Below the pieces are notes generated by a model that was not told the DNA's origin, searched no databases, and worked only from the letters and a program-made list of their open reading frames with translations. Position numbers and translations under genes: made by a program. Source: Glycera tridactyla (lineage: Eukaryota). Taken from it: a DNA stretch of 64,000 bases. The DNA is taken from assembly GCA_965644265.1 (NCBI GenBank), contig OZ286460.1, forward strand, positions 96,286,001 to 96,350,000. Direction: 5' to 3'. Below are positions 6,101 through 57,000 of this stretch, one piece after another; position 1 is the first letter of the stretch; the number at the start of each line of letters is the position of its first letter.

Positions 6101-9100
6101 GCAGTCAACTGGTTAAATCTTCACATTCTAAAGCATGAATTCTATTTATAAAAGATGAGTTTCATGATTGAGTGGGTCGAGCGGTGGGCCCATAAACTCT
6201 GGTAGCTGTCTTCTCAAATGCTGTACGTCAAACTTACACCTACAAGGTAAGCATCGTTCGACAAACCGACATTTGTGGAGACGCTACTCGGTTTCTAGGA
6301 GATTTCTAAGCTATAAAATATAAATAGAATGAGATTATTCATATTGATATCCATACTCTCCATTCTAGACATCACACTATAACTAGAACCATGAGGGGAA
6401 ATTTCCCCAAAACTTAATTTGGGGAAGAAAATATTCTACTGACATAGAAAAAGTCTGCATACCCACCATCGGATGTGCTTCTGCATAACGTATACACATT
6501 TATTCCACTAAATCTAGGAATGTGATACTGGAGGGGGAGTCAGTCCTGCAGTAGGAAAGTCATCATGCGAAAGTATGGGTCTGTGGTAATGTCTAGCAAA
6601 AGTAAATTCTCCAGACCAACCTGCAGCTTTCATTATGGAAGTAATCCATAGAGGACAGCTTTAATTGTGGAGGCTGATCTCGTGCCACGGGCTAGTGGTA
6701 GAAATCCGTTGCAAGTTTGCAATCGATCATCAGTTGGGCCTCTCCAACTGATCATCAGTTGAAATTGGTTATTGAACATAGCTTGGAATACTTCATCAAG
6801 CCCCAACCAAGCTTGAAGTAAAATGCAACAAAACACCACTCAATTTCATCCCTTTATCATAGAACCTGAGTTTCCACCTTAACACAGTGATCACGAATTA
6901 GTCGCTGTCTTTATGCATGTGCTTGGTCACCATCAAATACATCGATTCCCAGCATAACGAGAGCGCTATCTCATTTCATCTGACATCCACGCAATGACAA
7001 ACGTGTGATTTGTGATGGAATAAACCAACTCCCGCTTATCCTCATATCAAATGATTATGGATCCTCGTCGCATTCTTACCCTCAATGAAAGTTTATTTGT
7101 AATCTATCTTGTGTGTCTATGTTGACAACTTGGCTTTCTCCGTGAAACTGTTCCTGCGCAGCCATATACCCTGAAATCATCTTCAGCGCATCTAGTTCCC
7201 CGGTGGATAAAAGACTTATGGAAAGAGGCAAGAGAAGGAACACGACATAGCAACTGGTGGGAGGAAATCAAAGAAGCAGCAGAGATACTACAGATTAACC
7301 TGGAAGAATGGCTAGAAAAGAAATCCATAAATGATGGAAAATATCTGCGTATAAAAAAGCCAATACATGGGAACAAAACACATCGATAAAAGAAATAGAT
7401 GGACTGAAACCATACAACTCTACATACAACAGACGCAAACGAGAGCAGAAACTTCACAAAATGGAGACTAAACAGCATAAGATGGAACACAGATACAACA
7501 AAAGGTAAATTGTGCAAGGGATGCAGAAAAACAGAAGGTGGAATTATACACACCTTGATGCAATGCGAAAAAATTAGAAGTAAACATATCATAAAACTGA
7601 AACTAGCGAGTGAAGAAAAAGAGCAGGATATAATAAAACAAATGCTGACTGATGAGACATCGAAGAACATGATGTACTTAGAAGAAGTGATGAAAATATG
7701 GAGAGAAAACAAATGCCAAGCCACCTCTGTAGGAGAGGGTGACGCGTGAACATACCAGGANNNNNNNNNNNNNNNNNNNNNNNNNNNNNNNNNNNNNNNN
7801 NNNNNNNNNNNNNNNNNNNNNNNNNNNNNNNNNNNNNNNNNNNNNNNNNNNNNNNNNNNNNNNNNNNNNNNNNNNNNNNNNNNNNNNNNNNNNNACGCTG
7901 AAACTCCACCATCTCACGGATTTTCTCTGAACGGCACATCTCGTTTTCGTTTGCAAACATGCAAGTTTCACCCGTCAAGATGGCGCGATGAGTAAATAAA
8001 CAAATGCCGTTCTTGTCGATCACCTTTTTTGGCTTCAATCAGCTCGCCAACCAACCGATTTTCTACTACATTCGATCAGCGTTCCACCACTAGGGTGTAT
8101 GGCTATGTGACAGCCTTCTTCAAGAACATATGGTCAGGGTTGGATCACTCACCAGTCATACTTGCCAAGGCGAGGGTTAGGCAATCTTCAGAGTCTATGC
8201 CACCCGAGCAGTCAGTCCCAGCAACGATCCACGATTTCTTGGGGGTGGAGCTATTGGCGAGGCCCGTTTCCTCCATTTTACACACATCTTTGGGTTTGCA
8301 TCCCTCAAGAAGAGTGGGGAGCTCCTCCGAATCCCCGACCACCTGGCTACTGACATCTCCCTTCTCTCCGCGCATGGTCTTGTAGATGAGCTTGTGTCGC
8401 CTCTGAAATGATTCGAGCCAGCCAGTTGATGCCTTGAATTCTTCATTTCCAAGATCCCGGGCGATCTGCAGGGCTCGCTGTTTGATGAGAGGGCCACTGA
8501 TGGGGATATGTCTGATGTTGCAATCTTGCACCCAGATCCAAACCAACTTGTTAACCTCTTCATTGCCAGTTCTTCTACACGCTCGCTTCATTTCTGTATT
8601 TGTGGACTTCTCATATTCTTCGAAGATTTCACGACTTCTCTTCTTCAGGGTGTATATCTGAGTGAGGCCCACTGCCCACTTCTTTGCCACCAGCTTGGGC
8701 GATGTACCGCAGTCCATTTCCTTCAGAACGGCCACTCTATCCTCCAGCGTTAAGCATTTTCGAATAGGCTGAGACGTTTTGTTGGCATGCCCTGAAACTA
8801 AAAATGAGCAACTGAAAATGTAACACAATTGTTTGCTTCCCTCATCTGCCACCAACCAGAGGAAGGCTGGCGAACTGCCATCCTTAAAAAGATCTTCTTG
8901 GTGGGTAGCTACGAGGCTAGCACTGAAAATGCATCCCAACCCAGCTATAAAAGTATTGCACATATGCATGTGTGCACAGGCATGTCGAGGATCGAATAGT
9001 GGACAATGAGGTGCAATATGCGAAGGTAGATTTGCTCACGATGTGAATTGAGTCACTGCACCTCGGGATTCCTTGCGGAACGTGTAGAACTGCTCACAAA

Positions 9101-12100
9101 TGCTGGTTGTCAACCTGTTGTAGGCAAAAGGCACGAATTTAGACTTGCTCACATTATCGGAGACGGTGGATGGTGGAAAAACCGTGAGCAGGGTCATCCC
9201 ACCTCGGAACTAGCGGGCGGATTGCTCCTTGCTCTGGATTTGCGAGCGGAGCACTGCTCATGTAGAAAGTCATGAGTGGGGTCAGTGCTCAACCTTGCTT
9301 TTCGCTTACGACAGGTTGGTGGACTCCGCAGGATATTTTGACGAATAAAAATTCACATAGTGCAAGTATATAAAACTATCCCAATACTTAAGTACAGTTC
9401 CCCTGCCAAGCTTGACTGGCGAAACGATTACTCACCTGACTTTGAATCATCTAGACAAAATAGAAAGTAAGCCTATCACAACATTTGCTTCAAGGGACAG
9501 CAATGGATTGGGTAAGATGATTTGCAGTTGGGACACTGAGTATGAAAGGTTGCAATCTGACATTTCTTCACACATCAAACGGTCATATTCAGTGCATTGA
9601 ACTGAAAGGAATCGAAGAACTTTATTTTACCTCGTCTAAACAAACCATGTATGAGCGATAGAGTGATCAAACATGTGAGAGTTACAGAGATGAGCCAAAT
9701 CACACATCATCCAGGCTACTGATCTGATGTTCGCACCTTCATACTTGAATGATCTATGGCGTTGAATCCATGATGTGGTGATCTGCATACTAAAAACATG
9801 TGTCAATGCTGTATAAACAGAAGACCAGCATCTTGATCTGTGATTTGAGTGCCATTGTTGTCTCAATCAAGAGTTGTTCAACCTCGCTCGCGCATGTTTG
9901 AGATCATCACGCATGTTTAAGATCATCAGAAATGACCCGATAACTTTTGTGATGATGACATGAAACTTCCGGGCTCCCGCCCAAGATCCAGAGCCTGCCA
10001 TTCTGAAAAGCTTTTTAGGAGGTAGGGAAAGATCTCTCAGTCTGACAAGCATTGCTGAAGCTGAGGTTAACATTGTTATCAAGATTATTATTGGAATGAT
10101 GATGATCGATATGTAAAATAGGAATATAGGGTCAATAAGCTTGTGAGTAAGATGATCAAAAAGAAATCATTTGCCTATTCCAAATATTTGATTGTCACTG
10201 CTTATATACTGGCGTATCGCGGTTGTACGCGCAGTAAGCAAAATCGTGAGCGAAATGGGAAAACTGGGGTGCGCGCACCTTGTGAAAACAAGCATATACA
10301 TTAATATTGAATATTAATTTTATTTCTCCCATGATGCTTGCGACCGCGAACCCTAGTCCCGACAGAACGGTCTGCGATCGTATATTTGTATGACGCAAAT
10401 AGAGAACGAGGCTGGGGTTGGAGGGAACAGGGTACGCACCATCAACATTTTTCCACATCTCCCATCATGCAATGCGCGTTTTTCGTGGCTATTTTGCACA
10501 TTTCAACCACGATTTTTCACGGGTGCACGTATGCCCACGAAGGGTGCGCGTATTGCGTAGTTCGAGCAAAACATGGGGGTGCGCGTTTGCTTGAACGTGC
10601 ACGTACACCCGCGATACTACAGTATATAACAGCTGCAATTTTGATAATCTCTGGTTCTTCTCATGGTCTGCAGGGTTCAAGATGGCTGAACATGATCCAG
10701 TGTTTGTCTCCGCATTCATCACATTCTCGGTGAAGAGCTCAGCAATATTTACCAACACTGGATGTTGGGTTTTTTCTTTGCAGTTTGAGGATGACTTAGA
10801 ACATAGTAATTTGTCAATATCCCTGTCTTCCAGAAAGGTCTATCTCACTTTTACATCTTGCATATTGATGAGTAAATGTGTGGGCATGTCTAATTGGATA
10901 CGGGCGTATCTACGGCAATATCCAGCGATGGCACCAGCATAGTTGCAGAGATGCCATTGGCTGACAACCAAAAACCCTGAACACCTGACAGGAGGCCATT
11001 TTCAGCAAGATTTTGTGGAACAGCAAACCCATCAACCTCTAACTGATGACTCTAAAAGCCAAAATGATCAGCATAAAATGGGTATTTCTGTTGTATGCAT
11101 GATTGCTGCAATGCTTATGAATATCACGGAAATCTCCATATCTGCGGAACAATCACATCTCTGATAGTTACCACTGAACAGGTGAAGGAATCCAAATGGC
11201 ATTGTAGATGAGAGTTACCCAAAGCCTTTCAGTTAGTAATACTTCACAAACCTTCAAGAAAGCATATAGTTTCCGGAGGAAATCTGGTCAATTGATTGAG
11301 TTGAAGGTAAGTATACTTCCCAAGAGAATGAAAATAATCATTTGACCTACCAGGAATGGAGTTGATTCCACAGTCTATGACAACCGCGCCTGGTTTAATC
11401 CAGTCTCCTTTCACAAATTCTGGCTGGCCTATCGCCACCACCAGGATATCTGCCTCACGAACCTACAACAGGCATGAACAGTGATGAAATTGGCCCATAA
11501 CCAAATTTCCTGAAAAGCGCGTAAACCCCTATTGTAGGATTCAAACTTTTGCAGGGCGCATTTGTGACATTTGATCCCTCTCCTGCAGTAATGCACTTTA
11601 AACATTAACAGAAATTAAGGAAACCTGACAAAGGAGAAAACAGAGTCTGCATCATCTTTCCATGATCTACCCTGCACTACATTTTCACCTGCACTGTTTC
11701 ATATGATTATATGGACTGAATGGAAACTGTCCAGCAATGGTTAGTTGCGGGATTCAAATACCATCTACCATCAGATCTAACTCCCCTTGCCCCCCACCAA
11801 CATACATGTAAATAGACTGGCTCTTATGATAGTAGTTTGGATGAACTACCAACCATGGTCCTCAAAGAGTTAGGGGTGGAACGATTCACCGAAATTTCGA
11901 CAATATCAATTGTTTGCAAAAGAAACAATCGTCTCGAAACTAGGAGGAGTGTTTCGAAGTGTTTCGAAATACAAAGAAACATGGCTGATGAGTACTTACA
12001 AATGCCAATGAATACAGTAAATGCACCTTGTTTGAAAAAAAAACCATTGCGTAGAGCCCGAATGATGGAGATTTGATGAACTTTTCACTGGAAATGTCTT

Positions 12101-12828: not shown

Positions 12829-12869
<41 letters not shown>

Positions 12870-15800
12870 CGTGCGTGCGTGTGTGTGTGTGTGTGTGCGT
12901 GTGTGGCAGCGTGTGCATGGGCGTGTGTGCGTGCATGTGCACACATGCATGTGTGCAATATTTTTTTAGGTGGGTGGGGATGCCTTTTCAGTGCTAGCCT
13001 CATGGCTACACACCAAGAGGTTGATTTTATTTGAGCGATGTTTCGATGGTGCAATGGTTCAGAGTATTGGCAGTGAATTCCTCGTGAGGACGCCATAGAG
13101 TTCATGGATTTGACACTTTCAAACAACCAACAGAATTATCTATGGCATTTAACACTTTCTACAGACCTGCGGCACCTTCATGATGTCTCTGGCATGAATT
13201 AAATCATACGAAAACGGAAAAAAATGTGGACACTACCAGTTCCACGTATCATGATCACATGACCGCTGAGGGATGATACATGGTCAGTGTTAGCCTCATA
13301 GCTGCTCATTTACCATATATTGCCATAAACCCGCACATCCTCAATTAAACGCACACCCCCAATATCCTTGAACAAGAATCTCAAACTAGAGCTTTGTCAC
13401 AGAGGTGACTAAATATACCCCCGCCGCCACTTTGATACTGAGAATGTATGCAATATGACCAAGATATAGCCCACCTGTCTATAAAGGCCACCGACTGTCA
13501 CCAAAAAGTGACCTTTGTAGACATATGGTTTTTAATAGAGGTCATTTACCGGTGAAAAAAGTATCATGATCGCAGCTCAGGGTGAAATTTATAAGCAGGT
13601 GGTCTTTATGGAGAGGTGGTCTCTCAAGAAGGTTTGACTATGTGAGTGCATCCATGTGTGTATTTGTGTTGAGGGTCTGTTATGTAATTGTGGAGAGCGA
13701 AGAGATGGATGACTGCCATAGAGCAGAACAGCAGAAGCACGTCTATTACCAGAGGATCTTATATAACCATGAAAAGAAAGCCAAGGGGAGTGTGAGAGGC
13801 CTTACACCATACAGACAATTAATCAGCCTCGTTGATCCCGCTGTCTCGGTGAATTCCAAACTTACAGATACAACCAAATACACTCACGCACTGTGCGTGT
13901 ATTCGGCAATATACGTTAGCTCCTTTTTTTGTGAATGATGTCTCATAGGTCAAGTGGTTAGGGGTGTGGGCAATGTGTTTACTGCTTAGGATGCCTTTCT
14001 TATTACAGAGAGATTGTGTGTTCATCCTTTATGGAAACCCCAAATTGGGCATGGGTATTGAACATATAAACAGTTGTTGAGATTCTTTTGATACATAAAA
14101 TGTATACATATCGAATCTGCAGCCAAAGGAAAAGGATCCTAGATGGGAAAAGTTTATGTAGATTCCTGGTTCTGCCATAGTATAGCTGACCTCACCAAAG
14201 ACTGGGGCCTATACCTCCACCAATTTATCAGGAGTGACTTGACAAGTCACAAGTTTGACAGGAATTTCTATCATGTGAGATTGATCAATGAAAAAATATT
14301 CTAGGCGACTACATTTTTGGGGCCAGCTCAGAATATCATTCACATAAACTGCTCGAGAATCAGATTAGAAGATTTACAATGCAGTATGCATAGATCAGTC
14401 TGAAAATGTAGGGCATAGGCTGGCTCACTGTTTGATTTTTTATTTGAGAAACACACGTTTGAATATTTCAATTAGGCTGGTTGGTTGGTTGGTTGGTTGA
14501 TTTCTGGTTTGATGTTGTCAGTGCCATATGTGCCATACTGAGACGCCCACATACTGGCATGGTTGGGATCATTCGAGACTCCCCTTCCTGGATACCCAAC
14601 GGATGTTGAAATGTTTCTATACAATTCACAGACACACATGTGTCATTTCTGTTATCGAAAATATCAACCAGTCTAACTCTGTGAAGATGGGATTGAATTA
14701 TATGGTATCAGTTCTCTAAGTCAGTTATTTTTGGTCACTGTGTTCCCCAGAGAATAATCAGGCTGGACATTGCTAGTGTGCTACAGTATGACAAGCTGCC
14801 AATGCTCTACTTCAAAATTTTATTCCATAACTTTTCCAGGATATTTCCAGGTCACCAAGCAATTATTCCAGGACATGCAAATGAGTATGAAAATCTAAAA
14901 TGAGCTGTCATTGACTCATTTTGTGTCATATCTTAGCTAATATTGGTCCAATTTTCACAACGTACACAACAAAATGACTAGTAGAGTGAGATCTTTCAGA
15001 TGGTCTGATTGGGTTTTTATCCAGTATTGAATTTCAAATTCATGATTACCACACATTGACGATGCCATGTTTTTGTCAGTTTTTTAATCATAAAAGATAC
15101 AATATTTCAGCAAATTCTCAAAATTCCAGGACATTTCCAGGACATTCCTGGCAAAATTTATTTTTCCATAACTTTTCCAGTCCTGGAATTCTATTTGGCA
15201 ATTTTCCATAACTTTTTCAGGATTCCAGGACGCGTATGAACCCTGTACTTATGCAACCCTGTCAAGTGAACCCAACCCCTCCAGATACGATAATCAGTAA
15301 TTTATTAGTACCAAAAAGCTAAGTGACAAATGTACAAGAATGTATTCAAATGACACACAGAAAATAGGATGTGAAAAATAAGGTAACAAGGGTCATCAGA
15401 TTAGGTGTATCATCAACTTCTTATCAGCAGTCTGGACTGGAATCCTTATCAGATTAGGGAGTAATATGTTGATATTCAGCAATATCTGATAGCACAAGGT
15501 CATACACTGCATGAAACGGGGCAGAGTTTTCCATGAGTCATCCCTTTCACTTTTTCCACCCATACAGGCAAATGATGGGAAATTCAAGCTCTTGCAAATG
15601 TCCAAGACGAGGAAAACACTTACTACTACTGATGTAATTTCTAATAATAATTTAACATGTCGAAGGAATTAGGGTAGCCTGCCATAGGAAATCAATGCAG
15701 AGTATCTTGAGCTCTGATGAGATCTGGGATGAGGTCGAGGTGACTCTGTCAACATGAAAAATTCTCTTGGTTATCAGTGGTGCACAAATCCAGCACCTGG

Positions 15801-18800
15801 CGGTCCGGGTGTTTTGATATAGGCTGATAACAGCAACCAACACCTTAACTCATGTATATGTGTAAATTGGGAGATATACTGCATCCGCTCCCACTCCCCC
15901 GACCAATGCAAGTTGTTCTCAAATAGCAGACAGGCACTAAAATATCTGTGGGAAGGCCCCGCACCCCCAGGCAATCCATTCCTTCATCACTACATATTTT
16001 CATGTTGAACCCAGGGCTATAAGCTAAGGCCAGTCCTATTGGCATAAATAGATCAACTGTTGAGGAATTTGATCAATACTGTGGGAAGAAGATTCAATGT
16101 TACCGTCCCTATGGAGAGCTAAAGTGAAAGTTGATGTAGAGCCCAGAACCAGTTAATCTGTTCCCACAAATGCTGTGAAAAACATGGCTCTTTTAATGAC
16201 TGGATTGAGCAGTAAAATTCATGCCACAAAGACTGCATCCCATATCGCATAGATCAAGCAGTTCGTATATTACAATTACCTGAGCGTTTGATGAGTTCAA
16301 GACAGCCACGTGGGGTGCAGGAAACAATACAATCTTTCAGGTCACCACGGGACAACTTGGCAGCATTATCACCATGCAACCTGCAAAGTACAGTCGAACC
16401 TGCTCAAAAGACAGTCTCTATACAAAGATCGCCTGCCTACAAAGGACACTCTCTGTGCGATTGCAAAGGTGTTTCCTACAGTGAACAACCCCTCCACAAG
16501 GTTTATCTGTTTACAAGGATCACTTTTGAAAGTAACCAATAGCAGTCTTTGTAAACAGGTATACATGTAGTTACAATCAATTAATGAAGTGCCTTTATCA
16601 ATTGAAACTGAGGAAGTATCCTTGGGTGACATAATTCAAGACTGAAAACCTGGGCTCTACGTTGGTATGGTAGCCAGAGGTTAAATTTGGTAGCCATTGG
16701 CTACCCACAGGTAGCAATGTAGAGCTCTGCTGAAAACTCCTCTCACACACACAACCATATCTTCTCCTCATCCTAAAACCCAGAAATCATGTGTCGGCAC
16801 TAGCCATTGGCAAGTTAGCCAGGGGCTAACACTTCTCTCACCTGGCTAAAGACATTGACAAATCTTTGGCTAAATAGGCTAAGGAACTATATCCTCTTCA
16901 GGGCGCGAAGACATCGAAAAAATCAACCCGCCAGACGGGCGGGTAGAATTCGGATTTGCCCGCCCCCCTCGAAAAACAACACATCCGTACACAAATGTCA
17001 CCGGGATTGAGGAAACACCCATATATATACGTCGAATCGCCTTAGAAATACGTCAAACGTGATAAAATTCATTTGTTACGGGAAATATTGGCTTAATGCC
17101 TATGCAGGCCAGCAATGATTCATATTGTCAAACTCACCCATCAACATCTTTATGGGAGGCAATCTTGTTCAGGACATAATCTGTGTCGATCTGATTCGTG
17201 GTATCTAGCGGCAACTGAAAAAGGTTTCACAATGAAGGCTATTACACGATCAAACAATTTTGAAATGTGCTCGAATGAAGATGAACTTGACCAATCTCAT
17301 CCCATAGACAGCATGGTGAGTATCACAATGTCATCAATGTATGGACATTCCTGAACTCTCCCGTCACACTTTATCCAATGGGCTTCTGTGATTTAATCAT
17401 AAAAATCCCAAACTTGTGTTTTTTGTCTTGACACAAACTGATAACATCATGACAAGAAATGTCCTATAATTCTGCTGCAAATTTGCATATTACTGAATCT
17501 CATGACAGATTCCGTCATGGTGTACTCTGCTGGCACAAGCAGGGAGATCGAACCGTGGATAAGGGCTGGTGAAAATATTCAGGAAGGCAAGTGAAAATTT
17601 TAATTCTATCTGAGAGAGGGACATCCATGTAATAAATCAAATTATGTATTAATTCCTCAAGGCCAAGATAAAAACAGAGCTATGTTACCTGAACAATCAT
17701 ACCATGTACATCAGGGTCGTCATTCAGTTTAGTGATCATAGCAATCAGCTGAAAACAGAACAAAATGGATATTCTCAGATGACATACATTCCAGAGAATA
17801 GATATTGTGCCAAGTACAATTATAAAATTGGGCAATTGGTTACTCAGTAAGTTATCTGGCTTCTGGTTAAACATGGATCAGCATTTATGTGAATATCTCT
17901 ACACAAGAGCTCCAATACTGCTTTCACCACATGTGAGGTACTCCTCCTGCCAAATTGCCTCTGCATCATCGAGCACTGCAAAGGCTAGATGACCGCCTAT
18001 CCCCTTGTCAACCCCCCCCCCCCATCCACGCTAACATAAGACTCCTGAGATAGGAAAAGTACGACACAATCAATGCTTTCTGCCAAGCTGACAGAGTACC
18101 GGTTAGTACTTTGACATTTCCCCGATTCAATCAATTAAATTATTGCATCAGTGAGAAGTCCGATCGATCAATCAATCAGGCACATCAACAACTTTCAAAT
18201 ACCGTATTCTCCCTAATTAGTGCCCCCACCCTCATAAGCGCCCCCCCCCCCCCCCCCCCCTCCCGTTGGAGTTCTAAGTTGCCGACTGACTTTGATACTC
18301 CTGGACATTTGAAGTTCCCGCACTTTCTGAGCAAGCAAGAAGGCCAGATCCAACATGGCGGCGCACACGTGGATGAAAACCCACTCCTTGACGCCTGATA
18401 TTTCCGCTGTTTTTGGCGAATATTCAATGGATTTGAGATATATGCATGGATACCACACGATTTAACACCCAGCAATTTATTCGCACTATCATTTTTACTG
18501 TGAGATTGATATTTCGTGGGTTTTAATCGCGGAAAACTATGTGTGAAAACACAGGATTGACTTGTCGAAGTCAGACTGGTAATGCACACGACACCAGACG
18601 CTGCTATTTATCACTGTTTATTCGGCAAATTTTCGTCATATTCTTGTAGTTTTATCGTTTTTTCTCCTATGTGACACAAATAGTATCCGAGTAATACATT
18701 TATCAAATGTTTCGTTGATATTTTGCCAGCCATCGGCATTTTGTTCGCCAAAATACCCGATTATTGCCCATCGGCGATTTTGACAGATCTCGAACAAATA

Positions 18801-46371: not shown

Positions 46372-48197
46372 CGGCGGAAAGAAGGTGCGAGAACCCATAA
46401 CACTCCTAATAAATAAATGTCTACAAAGAGATTGGCCCAATGGATGGAAAGAAGAGAAAATAAAGCTACTGCACAAGGGAAAATCAAAAACCGACCTAAA
46501 CAACTATAGAGGGATATCAATAGGGAGCAACATGGCAAAAATCGGGACGAGAGTACTAAAAGCAAGAATGAAACATATAGTAGAAAGAGAAAATATATTA
46601 GGAGAAATACAAGCCAGATTCAGACAACACAGATCAACGACAGACAATATCCTAATCCTAAGGGAAGCAATTGAAGAAAGCAAAAGAAAGAAACGAGGAA
46701 TCATATTAAGCTCCATAGACCTAAGAAAGGCGTATGATAGGATATGGAGGAAAGGATTGTGGAAATGCTTGGGAAACAGTGGCTTCAAGGGGAAATGGGT
46801 CAATATGTTGAAGGAAATATACAAAGAAAACAGATGTAAAATAGTGCTGGATATAGGAGAAACGGAATGGATGGATGTGGAAGTAGGAGTGAAACAAGGC
46901 TACCCACTATCACCGGTACTCTTCGCCATATTCATGAGTGAGCTAGGACAAAGACTGTTGGGAAAAAATATTGGCTTCAAAATAAAAGAAGAAAAAACAC
47001 CGGCTCTGTTTTTTGCAGATGACATAGTCCTGATTTCAAATACGGAAGAGGAAAATAGGGAATTGATAAAAGAAGTCATGGCCTTCACGACAGAATGGAA
47101 ATTAGAAATCAGTCAGGAAAAAAGTAGAGTAGTCTGTATAGGAAGCAAAGAGAGAGAGAGATGAGGAATGGACAGTGGAAAATGAAGGAACAAAAATCTC
47201 ACTACAAAACACAGAGATATACAAATACCTAGGTATATACATCAAGGAAAAGAAACCCATTTAAAAAACACCTGGCAGATGTGAAAAAGAAAGGAATAAA
47301 CAAGGTAAATGCCATGAAGATAATAGCAAAACAAAGCATGAACCGAATATGGACAGCAGATGCTCTGTGGAAAGGAGAGATAATCCCATCATTACTGTAT
47401 GCATGCAAAGTACTACCAATTAATAACACAACAAAAAAGGAACTAGAACACATTCAATATGAAGCAGGGAAGTGGATTCTCAAGGGAAACAACGGCATGC
47501 CAAATGCAGGTATGAGGAGTGAATTAGGATGGAAAAAAATTGAAGGAGAGATAATGAGAAGGAAACTAAACTATTTGGTAAAATAGCTTTCATGAAAGAA
47601 ACCCGCTGGATAAAAAGCTTATGGGATGAAGCAAGGCAAGGAATGCGACACAGCAAATGGTGGGAAGAAATTAAAGAAGCAGCAGAGGAAATACAGATTG
47701 ACCTAGAAGAATGGCAGAGGAAAAAATCTCACAAGCAGTGGAGAACCTATATAAACAACAAAGTCGAGATTTGGGAACAAAATACATGGAGGAAGGAAAT
47801 AGAAGGACTGAAATCATTACAACTATATCCGAAAAAGACATTCCGACCGATGCGAGAGGAGTACATAACAGACACAAAAGAGAGCAGGAACTTCACGAAA
47901 TGGAGGCTAAACAACATAAGATGGAACACAGAAACGACAAAAAGAAAGGTATGCAAGGAATGCGAAAAAACAGAAGGGGGAATCATACGAACCCTGACTC
48001 AATGTGATAAAACCAGGAGTTTACATAGCGTTGAGTTGAAACAGAAAAGTGAAGAAGTACAAAAGGATATGATAAGACAAATGTTAACTGACAGAAAACC
48101 AGAGAACATGAGATACATGGAGAAAATAATGGCAACCTGGGAAGAAAATAAATGCCAAGCCACCTCTGTAGAGGAAGGCTCCTGCATATACCAGGAN
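46372..48197 (+). mobile_element. 5'-truncated, decayed non-LTR retrotransposon (LINE ORF2: RT + C-terminal Cys-rich region)
   Basis: YRGIS, FRQHRSTTD, IDLRKAYDRI, GVKQGYPLSP, FADDIVL and YKYLG motifs. Frameshifts at a (GA)n run near 47160 and near 47270, stop at 47584; A-rich sense strand; ends at an N gap. Confidence 0.93.
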
Positions 48198-49745
48198 NNN
48201 NNNNNNNNNNNNNNNNNNNNNNNNNNNNNNNNNNNNNNNNNNNNNNNNNNNNNNNNNNNNNNNNNNNNNNNNNNNNNNNNNNNNNNNNNNNNNNNNNNNN
48301 NNNNNNNNNNNNNNNNNNNNNNNNNNNNNNNNNNNNNNNNNNNNNNNNNNNNNNNCTGTTTAAATTTGACTGGGATTGATAATCAGTACAGGGGACGTTT
48401 ATCCCTCCCCGGGGAGCGCGGCTCGACGAGCCGCCGTGAGTTTCGCTTCTGTAGGTCTAGACACAGAGCCGGCTGGTCGACCTATACTTTGAAACGTAAG
48501 GTGAATTATTTGCGCGCTCTTTCAACAAGAACACTTTATTTTGCCCTTTCTTGATTGCAGTTTCATGCCTCTTCCAGGTGGATTTAGAATTAGTCAGATG
48601 AACGTCACATTGGCCACCAATATGGATTCTGTGTGGCTTTTAACTGTGCAATTTTACCGAGTTTTGCCCTCTATTCCATTATCGCTCACCCAGCAACGCG
48701 TAAACAATAACACCTGGGTCGACTGACGGACTCGCCAACTGAGTGCCGGTTTTTGCTGGTCGATTGACCGCCACCTGTCATTGTCAGATTCTGTCGAAAG
48801 GAGCTTCATTTTCATTCGGAATCAGCATGAAGTTATTTATAATTCATTTTTCATCATTCATCATTGTGAGGGAATTGCCATTTTAATCAGGTCTGGCTCT
48901 GAACGTATTTTTATGTGCTGAGATACAGCTTCTGGTAAGACAAATGCGAGTGGTCGCGCCCAAATTTGTATCGCGATCGTCATAACGAATTCAATTCAGT
49001 TCATATCGAATGAATTGATGGGCGCACAGCGTGAACCTGCGGGCGCCGCCGAATTCGACCTCCAATCTACCAGCGAAACCCAGAGTTGCAGACATCTAAC
49101 ACAAGATGGCGGCCCGAAATACACAAGAAATTCGAACATGCTGATTTAAATCCTCATTTGTTCAAAAATGGCACATAGGATCGAAAATCGGCACGTGGAA
49201 TCGATGAAAAACATCCTAAAGGACATATGAATACATTCAATACAGCTGCCAGACATATAACAGCAATTGCGTAGAGGCTCAGACGTCTAATTTCGGCTGA
49301 TGTGGTCACCACTACTTGACTTTGAACCCTACTCACGTTATAAAAGCCATTTGGCGAGAGGAGAAAATGTAACACGAATCTGAATTGGCTAAAAGCGGCC
49401 AGAAGTGACTTCCGGCTCCTGTCTGCGGCACTTAAATTTACGTGCCGCACATAGTTTTACGCATGTGGCCATTATTCAATCATTCTAAGCAGAGATTGAA
49501 CCAACGATCGACGGGAATTTTGCTTCAGATAGATGCCAAACAATGTTTATTCATATCTAACCATCATTTACGATGGGAAAATGTTTATTAGTGATCAATG
49601 GTGATGTACAACAAATTATAGGTGGCGGCCAGTCGACCAGTGAAAATCGATGGTCAGTTGTCCATGAATCGTGTAGTTGAAGTTGCGTTCTACGCATGCA
49701 GGGTCACGGGGGATGCTTGATGGATCAGGGGGTGATGTCACTACT

Positions 49746-52179: not shown

Positions 52180-54098
52180 ATGTGGGGCCCATCTAGTATG
52201 AGCGGGGCTCAAGGAGCTGTTAATGGTGAGACAGAGGAGTTGTGCCTGATGGACTGTGGATTGACGTCACTGACAGCTATTGCCCTTCCAGCATCATTAC
52301 GTTCACTCAATGTCCATTGCAATCAGATAACCAGGATCACTGGACTGTCCCACCTGGGCCATCTCACGCATCTTGATCTTTCCTCCAACCAAATTTCTCG
52401 TATGGAAGGTCTATCATTTCTTTCTTCGTTACGAACGCTCAATCTTGCATGTAATCTCATCACAGTTGTGGAGGGCCTACAGGACCTGAAATCATTAGTC
52501 AAAGTGAACCTGTCATTCAATCAGATCGTGAATGTAGACGGATTTCGTGTGATTCAGGACTCATCGTATAGACTGAGCCATATTGAGCTGCATGGCAATT
52601 ATATTGAGTCGGTAGAGCATCTGACACAGTGTCTTCACGAGTGTGACAATCTGCGTCATTTGACGTTGTCGCAGAGTGGCGCTGATAATCCAGTGTGTTC
52701 TCGTCTCGATTACCGCCAGCATGTCCTCCAGCAGCTCCCATACATACAAGTATTGGACGGGCTTGATCGCCATGGGCATCCAGTGGTTGCTGATGATGTC
52801 TTGGCTGATATCCCTGGTTTGGATCAGTATCTTGAATACCTTACATCAAGTAGTAACCCAGAACAGAATCCGATTGCAATGGCAACACCCAGAATAGATG
52901 CGGTACTGCGTATGTTCAAAGAGCAAGGTGCAACAACTCCAGAATTGACCAGTAATACTGAATTAGATACCAGTCATCACAGCAATTCTGGTGAGCAACG
53001 TGATCAAAAACCTCGCACCGATCATGACATACGACTGGAGAATTTGGAGAAACAGTTAGCTGATATATTAGCAACCAAAAAGCATGACAATGTGAAAAAT
53101 GTGAAAAGCCGACATCAGCCCAGAGTGTTCAACCATGTGCGACCTAAACATGATATTGATGTTACGGATGAAAGTGATGAGGATAATTCGGGTCCAGAAC
53201 GACCTCGATCAGCAAGACGAATTCCCACTTATCAGCGACAAACAGCTGCATCAAGGAAACGTGAGAATCAGAGTAAAGCCACCCCAAGTAGTGATAAAAA
53301 CATCAAGGTTGTAGGAAAAACATACACGCCAACTTCCAGCAGTAGCAAGACATCATTGAGTGCCCAGAAGATGAAAAGAACGCCTACCTCCGTAGCTGCT
53401 GATCAGCAGAAACGGGATGAATTGCAGTCAACATATGTCACCCTGATGGAACAATTGGAGAATGAACGTGAAAGGAGGTGGAAGGCAGAACAGGCAGCCA
53501 AAAAACTGGTTGATCATGTAAAAGAGTTACATTCTAAAGCACAAGAGGAGAAAAATCTGAATGAAGTGGCCGTGGAGTCATCAAAGCGATTGAAGGAATT
53601 ACTAACCAATGAGAAAGAAGCAAAGTTGAGACTGCAAGCTGAGCTAGAGGTTACACATGAAGAGTTGAAATCAGTAGCATCGCGCTTTGAAACATCACAA
53701 AAATCAGGCGATGAGCAGCAGAGTGCATTACGTGCAGCACAAGATACCATGGCCCGTATGGAGCGAGAACGTCTACAACAAGAGGCGCATCAAGCACGAA
53801 AAATCCAGGAAACTCAGGCCAAAGCAGCAGTATTGACGCGAGAATTGGAAATTGTCAGGAGTCAAGTGACCAGCTTGAAAGGCCAGGTGCAACAGCTTCA
53901 AGAGTTACTCGCTAATCGTGAGCAAGAGCACAGGCAAGAGCTGTCCTCTAGATACAAGCTTGATAGTGTGGAGCTCAAGGAAGCCATGAGAGAGGAGCGA
54001 GCTCGCATCGAGAAAGTCCACGCCGATGAGTTACGTGTGCAGCAGCAACGCATAGACGCCTTATCAAAACAATATTCTGATCTAGAGGATGAGTTCAG
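52180..54098 (+). CDS. LRRCC1: LRRCC1 large first coding exon
   Basis: 640-aa ORF after acceptor TTTCAG at 52178; donor AG|gtaggt. Confidence 0.95.
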
Positions 54099-57000
54099 GT
54101 AGGTCTCTGTATACCTTCTGAGCTTCCTGTTTTTTCAAATTGTCAGAGTTCAATGTTATGAATAGTTAGTCCAAAGCTGTGCTACAGGACAAATATAAAA
54201 CAGGTAGTTTCGCTGGTGATGATTCACTATACTGTATTGTGTTCAGATTCAAATTTGCTATATTGATGTTCAGATGCATTGTCTTTTAAAATTGATATGC
54301 TGTAGATAGTTCCCATTTTTCATTTCTTTCTGTTTGATGAATGAATTTTTTTGCTAATTTGAAGAAAGAAATCTTTGGACCTTTGTTTGGGCACCATCTC
54401 ATTGCAGTAAACTCCTCCCAATTTTCTTTTCTTGATTTGAGACATATTGAGGTCATGCAATCATCCTAAAGTGATGACCTCATTGACCAGTTGCATGTTG
54501 ATTATAAGGGGAGTGGGGTTAATACATTAGGTGATGAAAGGTATTATGGCACAAATTATCTTGTGACCAATAGTTAGTCTGGGTGTGCCACTACCCAGTA
54601 GCACACCCACCACACAATGGCGGACTGGAAACACATCTGGCCGGAGAGATGTGCCTCGCTATTAAAGGTCTCTGATTAAGCTCTGTCTGGTGGAGTACAA
54701 TTTTCATCTGCCCTCCTCCACATTTTCTTATGCCCCTTTAGAATTACAGTTGAACCTGTATTAAACAATCACTGTATTCAGCAACCACTTTCTCATATCC
54801 AGCTGGATTATTTATCACTCTATCTCACCTGTATTTATCAACCACCTGTCTTAAGCAACCGATTCTTAATTTCCCAAGGGTTGTTGCTCAATACAGGTCC
54901 TGCTGTATGAACCATGTCGGGTTATTGACCTGTATATTGGGCAGGCACACCATTCAAGGTACCTGCCCTAACAGTCCATTTGACCATTTGTGCCAGTGGG
55001 GCAGGCCTTTACAGAGAGCCCTGAATACATGTATTCTTTTTCTCATGATTTTCAGGTTAGCACTGACGATCGAAGCTAATCGATTTAAGGAGATGCAGAC
55101 AGCGTTTGAGAATCTGAGTGAAGAAGCAGCCAGCACTAAGGCAGCATTACTGGCAGCTCACAATAAAGAAGAGAAAACTGCTACTGTTCTCACAGAACTC
55201 ACCTCTCTAGTTAAGGAACAGAAAGGTATGATGATCAGTGATGTCACCAAGATGAAACTAAATTTTCAGAAATACAGTTACATTTTCTTAAAATACTCCC
55301 AAATATTCTCAAACCTATCAACTCTGAAACTCTCGAGCAGATTTTAGCAATTTCTTGATTAAAATTCTTTAACCAATTTTCGGATTTCCCCAAAAAATTC
55401 AGAAAATTTGCACCACTGTAGTCATATGCTTCTACTTTGTTACTAGAGTGAATTAACCCCACGTATGTTTGGTTAGGAGTGTGATTTCATCAAGACAATG
55501 ATCAGATCTTTCTATCAGAAGAAAGATAAAGGATATGGGATATTAGCCAGTCCCTAAAAGTCTTATGATAAGGATGCAATGTTCCTTGCTGAGCCTTAGT
55601 AGTTGGTATCAACTGTTGATGTTCTTCTTGAGAGTGGTGCCAATCATATTGTGTTCCGGGGTCGAGGAAGTGATGCCTGCATGTGACAGTATCCAATTTT
55701 CATAGACCAAGAATAGATAGCAGACAATCCTCTGGTGTGATGCATGTTGTTGAACCTCAAAGAAACCAGAACAAATTACCCATGTGAATGCTGCTCTATT
55801 AGACAGGAACTTGAAGTGGAATAGTGGGAGAAATTCTTCATGTCTAGTTTCCCTTTTTGCTCAAACAAGTATTATGCCAGAACTACTAACTGTACATGCT
55901 TATTCTATCCATGCATTTCATTTGTCAAACAGGCAGAATAACAGAATTAACGCGTTGTAAACAGGAGCAAAGCACGGAGCACCGAGATCGCATAGAAACA
56001 CTGGAGCTGCATCTTGAAGAAGCAAGGAAGAGAATGGTGCAGTTTGAACTTCTGAAGCAAGAAAAGGTAAAACAGAATTAAACTCCAGGGCTCAGTAGTC
56101 ACCTTCAGCAGAGAAAGGCTCAGTGGTATTTTTTGCACAAATGCCATCTGTTTTTATCTCAGTGATGGTTATTTTTCTTGCATGCCAATTTTGTCTTACA
56201 ATATGTCATTCCAATTTATTGCAAATATCATCATTCTCTCATAATTGGCATCATTGTGGCTTCTGGATGGTTTTCATCAATGTTTTTGAAGAGTGAAACC
56301 TCTTGGTCAGGCTGTTTTTGGAGATCCCACCGAGAAACGGACAACCTCAGTATGACCCATGTATCTGGGATGATGTTTCAAATAAATGGAAGAAATAGGC
56401 TGGCTAGTGTGGCCAGGTGACAACTACCAGGGGAACAGAATAGACAATGTCATTCAAGTGCATAAATTGGCCTTTCTGGTGGGTCCATCCAGAAATAGGG
56501 GGGGGGGGGGGGTCCTATCAGGTTTATAGGGGCCAATCGCCCTGGATTAGACACTGAGTGGGGTAGTATGATGCTTCAACTCATTGTGCTAGGGACAGTA
56601 AGAAACTCTGTGATTCTTGCCTGTACCTTTAATTGAATCTCCGGAAGTAATTTTACAAAATTATGGCCCCCGTCAGTCTTATGCGAACTGGGCCACTATC
56701 CGTCAACAGGGAGGCTCAGCTGTGTGTAGGGCTGGGTCGAAACACATTAGTCACGAAATGAAACATTTCTAGAAACGCACCTCACAAAATGAATGACGAA
56801 AAAACACCACTCAACCCTCCTTTAGGTATCCGGCATGGTCCTTCCCAGTGTGAGTTGCACCCCTATTCTGGTGGTCTTGCATCATGGCCCAACTACAGTC
56901 GAACCTGTCTATAAAGACCGCCCTCGGTCGCATTGAAAAGTGGTCTTTATATGCAGGTGGTTTTTATAGAGAGGTCATTTACTATTGAAAATACTACCGC

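Follow-up and report, generated by a model that had tools for sequence, protein, structure and literature searches.

Does a transposase-derived exon that lies in an intron of the MTHFD1 gene of Glycera tridactyla serve that gene as a captured coding exon, does it code for a DNA-binding protein by some other route, or is it the dead remnant of a transposon? The locus falls in a window of 64,000 nt (contig OZ286460.1 of assembly GCA_965644265.1, positions 96,286,001 to 96,350,000), and all coordinates given here are positions within that window. A first-pass annotation of the same DNA had read the segment as a candidate fusion of MTHFD1 with the DNA-binding portion of a pogo/CENP-B-type transposase. 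Our comparisons with related transposases show that it is exon 1, standing alone and in sense orientation in the MTHFD1 intron, of a pogo/Tigger-like transposase gene that itself has an intron. That this exon has been maintained as a DNA-binding coding sequence, in whatever context it may be expressed, is a proposition to which we give about even chances.

A solo first exon of a pogo/Tigger-like transposase

The segment (Table 1) is free of stops on the strand of MTHFD1, as first described, and is part of an open frame that runs from 9035 to the TGA at 8147-8145 (minus strand) and holds a 274-codon open reading frame (ORF) opening with ATG (8145-8969). Both helix-turn-helix (HTH) motifs that had been ascribed to the peptide were recovered. 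In the Pfam search, HTH_Tnp_Tc5 stands above its cut-off and CENP-B_N (residues 70-115 of the 274-aa ORF, E = 3.5e-4) slightly below, with 20.6 bits for a gathering cut-off of 21.2 bits; the structure of the CENP-B DNA-binding domain (1HLV) aligns to residues 8-132 with E = 2.9e-12 and spans both HTH domains. We further built a profile of 518 positions from 56 full-length relatives. Its positions 5-218 match the exon at 214 bits, which covers the whole DNA-binding domain and the start of the DDE catalytic domain, with only the first ~65 residues of the latter present. The observation that the peptide ends at the start of the DDE domain and reads Glu for the first catalytic Asp was thereby borne out: Glu173 (GAG, 8273-8271) replaces an Asp that is present in at least 90% of the relatives. 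Overall, 5,832 representative proteins are related to the exon at E-values up to 0.001. By these homology measures, the 212-codon open frame and the 214-bit profile match together are real coding-derived sequence, beyond chance. The AlphaFold model is confident for the two-HTH domain (predicted local distance difference test score, pLDDT, >90) and weak for the β stub that follows it (55-75), and it fits all models of expression alike.

The remainder of the element is gone. Exon 2, which carries the remaining catalytic domain (profile positions 219-518), gave no match anywhere in the 64 kb in a maximum-sensitivity six-frame profile search, and a tblastn search of the window with 96 relatives of at least 400 aa gave nothing outside 8136-8795; a complete DDE_1 domain with its acidic triad is absent from this copy. 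In line with the first-pass annotation, a search for terminal inverted repeats gave nothing convincing: the two flanking stretches that pair best, over 23 nt, reach 74% complementarity and lack a TA duplication, in a search that had no family consensus and could miss old repeats. Rfam gave no match in the window. A downstream peptide gave a first impression of a decayed DDE motif, which neither the tblastn nor the profile searches support. Further, the possibility that exon 2 is hidden in the run of Ns at 7761-7894 was ruled out: the Ns extend a repeat, the second copy of which is masked from the corresponding alignment position onward, and 134 nt are too short for the about 900 nt expected.

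Table 1. Features of the pogo-type exon and of its surroundings in the MTHFD1 gene (a slash marks a splice junction).
Feature	Position	Strand	Remarks
Candidate cassette exon = pogo/Tigger-like transposase exon 1	8153-8791	-	639 nt: 2 nt + 212 codons + 1 nt; stop-free
First helix-turn-helix, CENP-B_N type	8625-8762	-	Pfam PF04218; 1HLV alignment; predicted helices with pLDDT >90
Second helix-turn-helix, HTH_Tnp_Tc5	8388-8564	-	Pfam PF03221, E = 1.5e-16
Decayed DDE catalytic-domain stub, residues 146-212	8154-8354	-	Conserved-residue loss, maximum-likelihood branch, Tajima counts
5' splice site GTGAGT	8147-8152	-	Last exon base G at 8153; native phase-1 donor of the transposase subfamily
Pyrimidine-rich stretch, candidate 3' splice sites	8792-8813	-	Three AGs (G at 8812, 8798, 8792), directly upstream of the transposase start
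ATG at the relatives' start position (MASNK.., MSSKRK..)	8786-8788	-	Exactly 1 nt out of frame with the DNA-binding domain
98-nt repeat	8885-8982		Inverted second copy at 12932-13029, 86% identity
MTHFD1 upstream exon (exon 8)	11462-11351	-	Ends ...DCGINSIP g/gtaggt, phase 1
MTHFD1 downstream exon (exon 9)	1913-1747	-	Starts ccag/at gag acg, phase 1

A donor inherited from the transposase gene

The exon ends in a consensus-like donor (CTG/GTGAGT, with the junction between 8153 and 8152), and reading through it meets the stop TGA (8145-8147) two codons later. Both features are present as the first-pass annotation had them; what does not stand is their use as a sign of exon capture. The nearest relatives with DNA are four loci, L001-L004 (encoding P0001, P0007, P0089 and P0027, respectively), whose proteins are 33-47% identical to the exon peptide in alignment A3, with 49% for P0001 by BLASTP. 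Their donors, G/GTAAGA, G/GTGAGT, G/GTAGGT and G/GTAAGT, share both codon and phase with that of the pogo exon, and the signature of the relatives, ..C(A/S)SM(T/R) G/GT(A/G)NGN, has its counterpart in the ..ASMT G/GTGAGT of the window. Intron position and phase are common to all four, and exon 2 was recovered in three: in L001, L002 and L004 introns of 505, 447 and 95 nt are followed by a good acceptor and then by (G)EKLKP.VIGK.., the continuation of DDE_1, and in L003 the contig ends before exon 2 could appear. Many other database ORFs of ~220-240 aa also stop at about this intron point.

On this comparative evidence, the donor, its phase and the stop two codons on are inherited from the transposase gene, rather than having evolved for capture: the strong donor and the early stop are by-products of the conserved phase-1 intron. 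The phase match with the next MTHFD1 exon is therefore either a one-in-three coincidence or the reason why this copy could be used.

Unequal change in the DNA-binding part and the catalytic stub

For want of close relatives we used a within-protein contrast, setting the DNA-binding part (141 columns) against the stub of the catalytic domain (62-67 columns). First, the DNA-binding part keeps 18 of its 21 strongly conserved residues, the misses being I>L, F>V and I>L, which places it at the 41st percentile of 105 relatives. The stub keeps 11 of 19, compared to 84% in the relatives (7th percentile of the 105), and its misses include W>S, Y>C, N>K, D>E, F>A, K>I, K>E and R>C. Radical misses number 0 of 21 in the former and 8 of 19 in the latter (Fisher p = 0.001, for a split made post hoc). 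Second, on a fixed 35-taxon tree the maximum-likelihood terminal branch of the DNA-binding part is 0.41, compared to 0.37 for P0001 and 0.43 for P0007, whereas that of the stub is 1.07 compared to 0.21 for both. Third, Tajima relative-rate counts of changes unique to the window and unique to the relative are 22:12, 22:19, 13:19 and 18:15 in the DNA-binding part, none of them significant, and 20:3, 20:4, 18:5 and 19:4 in the stub (p = 0.0005-0.01). Finally, the unique changes in the DNA-binding part have a mean BLOSUM62 score of +0.68 and fall in less conserved columns (0.45 vs. a background of 0.55), and those in the stub have a mean of -0.10 and are indifferent to conservation (0.62 vs. 0.64). 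These comparisons show that the DNA-binding part of the copy has changed no faster than in its nearest intact relatives, and mostly conservatively, while the stub has lost conserved residues.

We also simulated decay. If neutral, the loss of identity in the stub amounts to ~0.25 substitutions per site, at which the probability of no stop in 207 codons is 0.007 and the identity of the DNA-binding domain would be multiplied by 0.59; neither stops nor such a fall was observed. Uniform neutral decay is excluded because the simulated outcomes are not seen and because the DNA-binding part has no excess change where the stub stands at 20:3. We infer that the DNA-binding domain has been kept under purifying selection and that the catalytic stub has been released from it.

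The host gene, the acceptor and the start codon

The flanking exons are those of MTHFD1. In the PDB search exon 8 corresponds to residues 207-242 of the human protein and residues 3-54 of exon 9 to its residues 246-297, both exons score higher with MTHFD1 than with MTHFD2 (54.7 vs. 23.4 bits for exon 8), both are colinear with the dehydrogenase/cyclohydrolase domain, and their normal junction is colinear with human MTHFD1 with no residues lost. Three more exons of the gene were found near 17214, 16380 and 12769, and the C-terminal formyl-THF synthetase domain of a trifunctional enzyme would fall past the left edge of the window. The intron between exons 8 and 9 measures 9,437 nt, in agreement with the 9.4 kb first given, and its description as the largest, like the exon numbers 8 and 9, could be compared with the five located exons only. 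Both host junctions (11351 and 1913) are in phase 1 as reported, and the loop at this point, which had been called shorter in bacterial FolD, is indeed ~6 residues shorter in alignments with E. coli FolD.

The two ends of the pogo exon are likewise in phase 1, so that its inclusion would keep the frame of MTHFD1. Its candidate acceptor, ...catttttagtttcAG/GG, is pyrimidine-rich as described, and the last two of the three clustered AGs (8798 and 8792) are in frame. Pyrimidines occupy 9-10 of the 12 positions from -14 to -3, compared to 7-8 of 12 in five real MTHFD1 acceptors, and the donor matches MAG/GTRAGT at 8 of 9 positions, compared to 6-8 of 9 in four real MTHFD1 donors. No equivalent acceptor is present in the relatives L001-L004. 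Host exons and transposase domain are thus in frame over AG...GT sites with no stop between them, and this rests on one base near 8786-8790, adjoining a run of four As: a single additional base would put the cassette out of frame and leave intact a nested gene for the DNA-binding domain only. The double phase match is much weaker evidence than the open frame and the profile match, because a donor in the right phase is expected in one case of three and an in-frame AG is nearly guaranteed in the 81 further open codons upstream.

The homologous ATG is out of frame (Table 1) and the only in-frame ATG upstream of it (8969) falls within the 98-nt repeat; therefore, as assembled, the exon has no proper translation from a start of its own. 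The two copies of this repeat are located immediately upstream of, respectively, the pogo exon and an MTHFD1 exon, the second copy near a long (CA)n tract at ~12830-12900; the repeat may be a small non-autonomous element, and no inverted repeats were found around the second copy. Further upstream, a 15-nt segment bounded by AG...GTGAGT, ATGATTCAAAGTCAG (9436-9450, minus strand), is phase-neutral and would keep the frame if placed between exon 8 and the pogo exon. As the start exon of a standalone gene it was rejected, for when spliced to 8791 or 8797 it leads to a stop after 12 codons. The CpG observed/expected ratio is 1.05 at 7895-8152 and 0.81 at 8970-9450, compared to 0.58 in the window, a weak hint, from small samples, of a promoter-like unmethylated region.

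Weighing the explanations

The history of a maintained exon would be as follows. A pogo/Tigger-like transposase gene landed in sense orientation in the MTHFD1 intron; of this gene the window retains exon 1, with its complete two-HTH DNA-binding domain, and lacks exon 2; and selection would have kept the exon as an exapted transposase DNA-binding domain. Less surely, its expression would come about most simply through splicing with MTHFD1, because the homologous ATG does not share its frame, whereas the native donor has been preserved and matches the phase of the MTHFD1 exon that follows. A 213-residue cassette would then be inserted in the loop at human residues 242/243; an alternative route would be a chimeric transcript that joins the pogo exon to exon 9. 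In either case the product would be a DNA-binding protein of the pogo-derived sort, with relics of the transposon family it came from as its probable targets. The fusion proposed at first keeps in its favor the sense orientation, splice sites as good as the real ones of MTHFD1 and frame-compatible ends, and loses force through the inherited donor and the single base that sets the frame to exon 8. A chimera of any kind with MTHFD1 is a candidate known from DNA alone, and we regard it as doubtful. An MTHFD1 isoform with a maintained pogo domain, either inserted in frame in the dehydrogenase/cyclohydrolase domain or placed ahead of exon 9 and the synthetase half as a fusion, seems unlikely to us, and a function as a DNA-tethered or folate-sensing enzyme is pure conjecture.

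Several points weigh against a maintained exon, or against its expression with MTHFD1. The decisive base beside the run of As could reflect an error of assembly or a lesion of recent date. The 639 nt of the exon far exceed the measured MTHFD1 exons (101-167 nt), and as a cassette it would interrupt the Rossmann-type domain of the enzyme. The open frame of the stub is insignificant by substitutions alone (P ~0.24 in simulation). The rate tests use a stub of 62-67 columns and distant relatives, 40-50% identical and chosen by similarity to the query, and no relative above 50% identity exists in any searchable collection: the word-indexed protein search gave a best match of 49%, the exhaustive search of representative proteins reached at most ~50% and had no MTHFD-length fusion among its top 150, an exact look-up showed the pogo-exon ORF to be absent from the protein collection, the metagenome scan gave no close relative, and the Atlas returned generic jerky/TIGD clusters only.

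The explanation that survives best beside a maintained exon is a neutral relic, i.e., a truncated dead copy in which the open frame, the splice-like edges and the matching phases all lack a function and the uneven decay is sampling noise or was inherited from the source. We consider it a serious possibility, if a less than probable one. It accommodates the lost catalytic domain and the replaced first Asp, the out-of-frame start codon, a donor that is a by-product of the transposase gene, the other repeat fragments that the intron holds, and a CpG observed/expected ratio of 0.61, close to the background of 0.58 and uninformative as an age marker. However, uniform neutral decay cannot yield both a 20:3 stub and a DNA-binding domain without excess change; further, 212 codons contain no stop or frameshift, and the GC content is 0.51 as opposed to 0.42 in the intron. 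If the unevenness was instead inherited, the source, with its decayed stub and constrained domain, would itself be a functional gene for a DNA-binding-only protein.

A nested or chimeric gene that does without MTHFD1 exons 1-8 is unlikely in our estimate. It would start within the intron and either end at the stop at 8145-8147, giving a DNA-binding-only protein of ~215-274 aa, e.g., a transposon repressor, or splice from its native donor into exon 9. Such a gene is in keeping with a constrained DNA-binding domain and with a stop that follows the donor by two codons, and pogo-derived DNA-binding proteins are a well-known class (witness the CENP-B match and the jerky and TIGD clusters). As a standalone gene, moreover, the locus has exactly one lesion, the one-base offset of the ATG at 8788-8786, which sits at the relatives' start beside the run of four As, a context prone to assembly errors and natural indels. 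Yet that homologous ATG is out of frame as assembled, translation from the in-frame ATG at 8969 inside the 98-nt repeat would bring in 60 residues without homology, no AATAAA occurs within 250 nt past the stop, and a perfect donor left unused would be unexpected.

The specific model of a functional in-frame cassette, in which exon 8 is spliced to 8791 (or 8797) and 8153 to exon 9 to give the enzyme a sequence-specific DNA-binding module, we hold to be distinctly improbable. It explains much: both junctions are in phase with two of the three AGs in frame, the splice sites equal or surpass the real ones of MTHFD1, the sequence is without any lesion under this model, the out-of-frame ATG parallels the single-base deletion of KRABINER, the insertion loop is ~6 residues shorter in E. 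coli FolD, and no stop interrupts the decayed stub before a consensus donor that is itself intact, which is needed only if that donor is used. The donor phase is nonetheless inherited and its match a coincidence of one in three, the frame hangs on one base, the literature search on MTHFD1-transposase fusions gave nothing on the subject, and an RNase-H-like fold would be represented by its orphaned beginning only, the 3' ~65 residues, at a pLDDT of 55-75; further, the fusions KRABINER, SETMAR and PGBD3-CSB described by Cosby et al. join upstream host exons to the transposase, with no cassette inside an enzyme domain among them.

Comparison with known transposase-derived genes

According to a study of captured transposases, these use splice sites borne by the transposon; in KRABINER, SETMAR and PGBD3-CSB the host exons lie upstream and the acceptor just upstream of the transposase ORF, and KRABINER needed a single-nucleotide deletion to form one ORF (bioRxiv 10.1101/2020.05.07.082677). 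Set beside these three, the G. tridactyla locus likewise has a DNA transposon in sense orientation in a host intron, at least one transposon splice site, and a DNA-binding domain kept with catalysis lost, and with KRABINER it shares a single-base frame change near the transposase start. It differs in that its transposon-derived site is a donor, that of the element's own intron, not only an acceptor, and in being a candidate fusion predicted from DNA; further, theirs is a C-terminal DNA-binding domain on a regulatory domain, whereas here a metabolic enzyme would carry the domain either internally, as a cassette, or at the N-terminus.

A second group, the domesticated pogo-derived DNA-binding proteins CENP-B, TIGD1-7, JRK, POGK and POGZ, as far as is known keeps a whole ORF of transposase length and is usually intronless. 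The window copy shares with these proteins the paired CENP-B_N and HTH_Tnp_Tc5 module and a degenerate catalytic triad, but it comprises exon 1 only, has no in-frame start and lies inside another gene. The Drosophila pogo element, too, is described as consisting of two spliced ORFs. With the pogo-type transposons L001, L002 and L004 the exon shares the ..CASMTG signature and the phase-1 intron after it; they, in contrast, keep exon 2 with DDE_1 and the catalytic Asp, and the window copy has neither. The KP form of the P element is a truncated transposase that acts as a repressor. By analogy, selection could favor as a repressor here what an element with an internal deletion still encodes, a protein that only binds DNA, although the window differs from that case in having no convincing inverted repeats and no demonstrated copy family or cognate active element.

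Among the public predicted proteins, several of 770-1,350 aa (P0006, P0008, P0010 and P0011) contain two to six HTH_Tnp_Tc5 domains, of which two to four are accompanied by CENP-B_N; an example is LOC114335182 of Diabrotica virgifera, with three CENP-B_N/HTH_Tnp_Tc5 pairs. Either gene models have chained several transposon copies together here, or DNA-binding proteins of many domains really exist.

Other features of the window

The repeat that contains the run of Ns at 7761-7894 as its right part is a retroelement-associated fragment at 7199-7894 (plus strand, antisense to MTHFD1), ~260 nt downstream of the donor. Over 600 aligned columns it is 72% identical to 47602-48196, a stretch that adjoins both a further run of Ns (48197-48355) and an RVT_1 ORF. 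This second copy (47602-48355, plus strand) lies downstream of that reverse-transcriptase ORF (46385-47164). The two N runs start at the same aligned position and therefore look like deliberate masks of one repeat family, not assembly gaps.

At 52180-54102 (plus strand), 98% of the length of an unbroken ORF of 640 codons is homologous to LRRCC1, the leucine-rich repeat and coiled-coil centrosomal protein. LRRCC1 normally has ~1,020 aa, and the single long exon suggests a retrocopy or an intron-poor gene. Its best identity, 46% (Branchiostoma, Lingula, molluscs), indicates that the protein collection holds no close relative of this genome.

Implications

The locus carries a caution for the annotation of transposase fusions: intron-bearing pogo elements leave intronic fragments with good splice sites ready-made, and such fragments will often look captured. 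If the exon is not expressed with MTHFD1, it would offer a clean DNA-binding-only transposase remnant with a measurable signature of constraint. If the two are expressed together, transposase capture, so far with partners that have regulatory domains, would come to include a core metabolic enzyme, and by a route not known from the vertebrate survey, in which the donor of the transposase's internal intron is reused to make an internal cassette. Such a protein would place an enzyme of one-carbon metabolism at particular sites in the DNA, which would probably be remnants left by the same family of transposons, and would provide a direct handle on the nuclear roles that have been reported for this enzyme.

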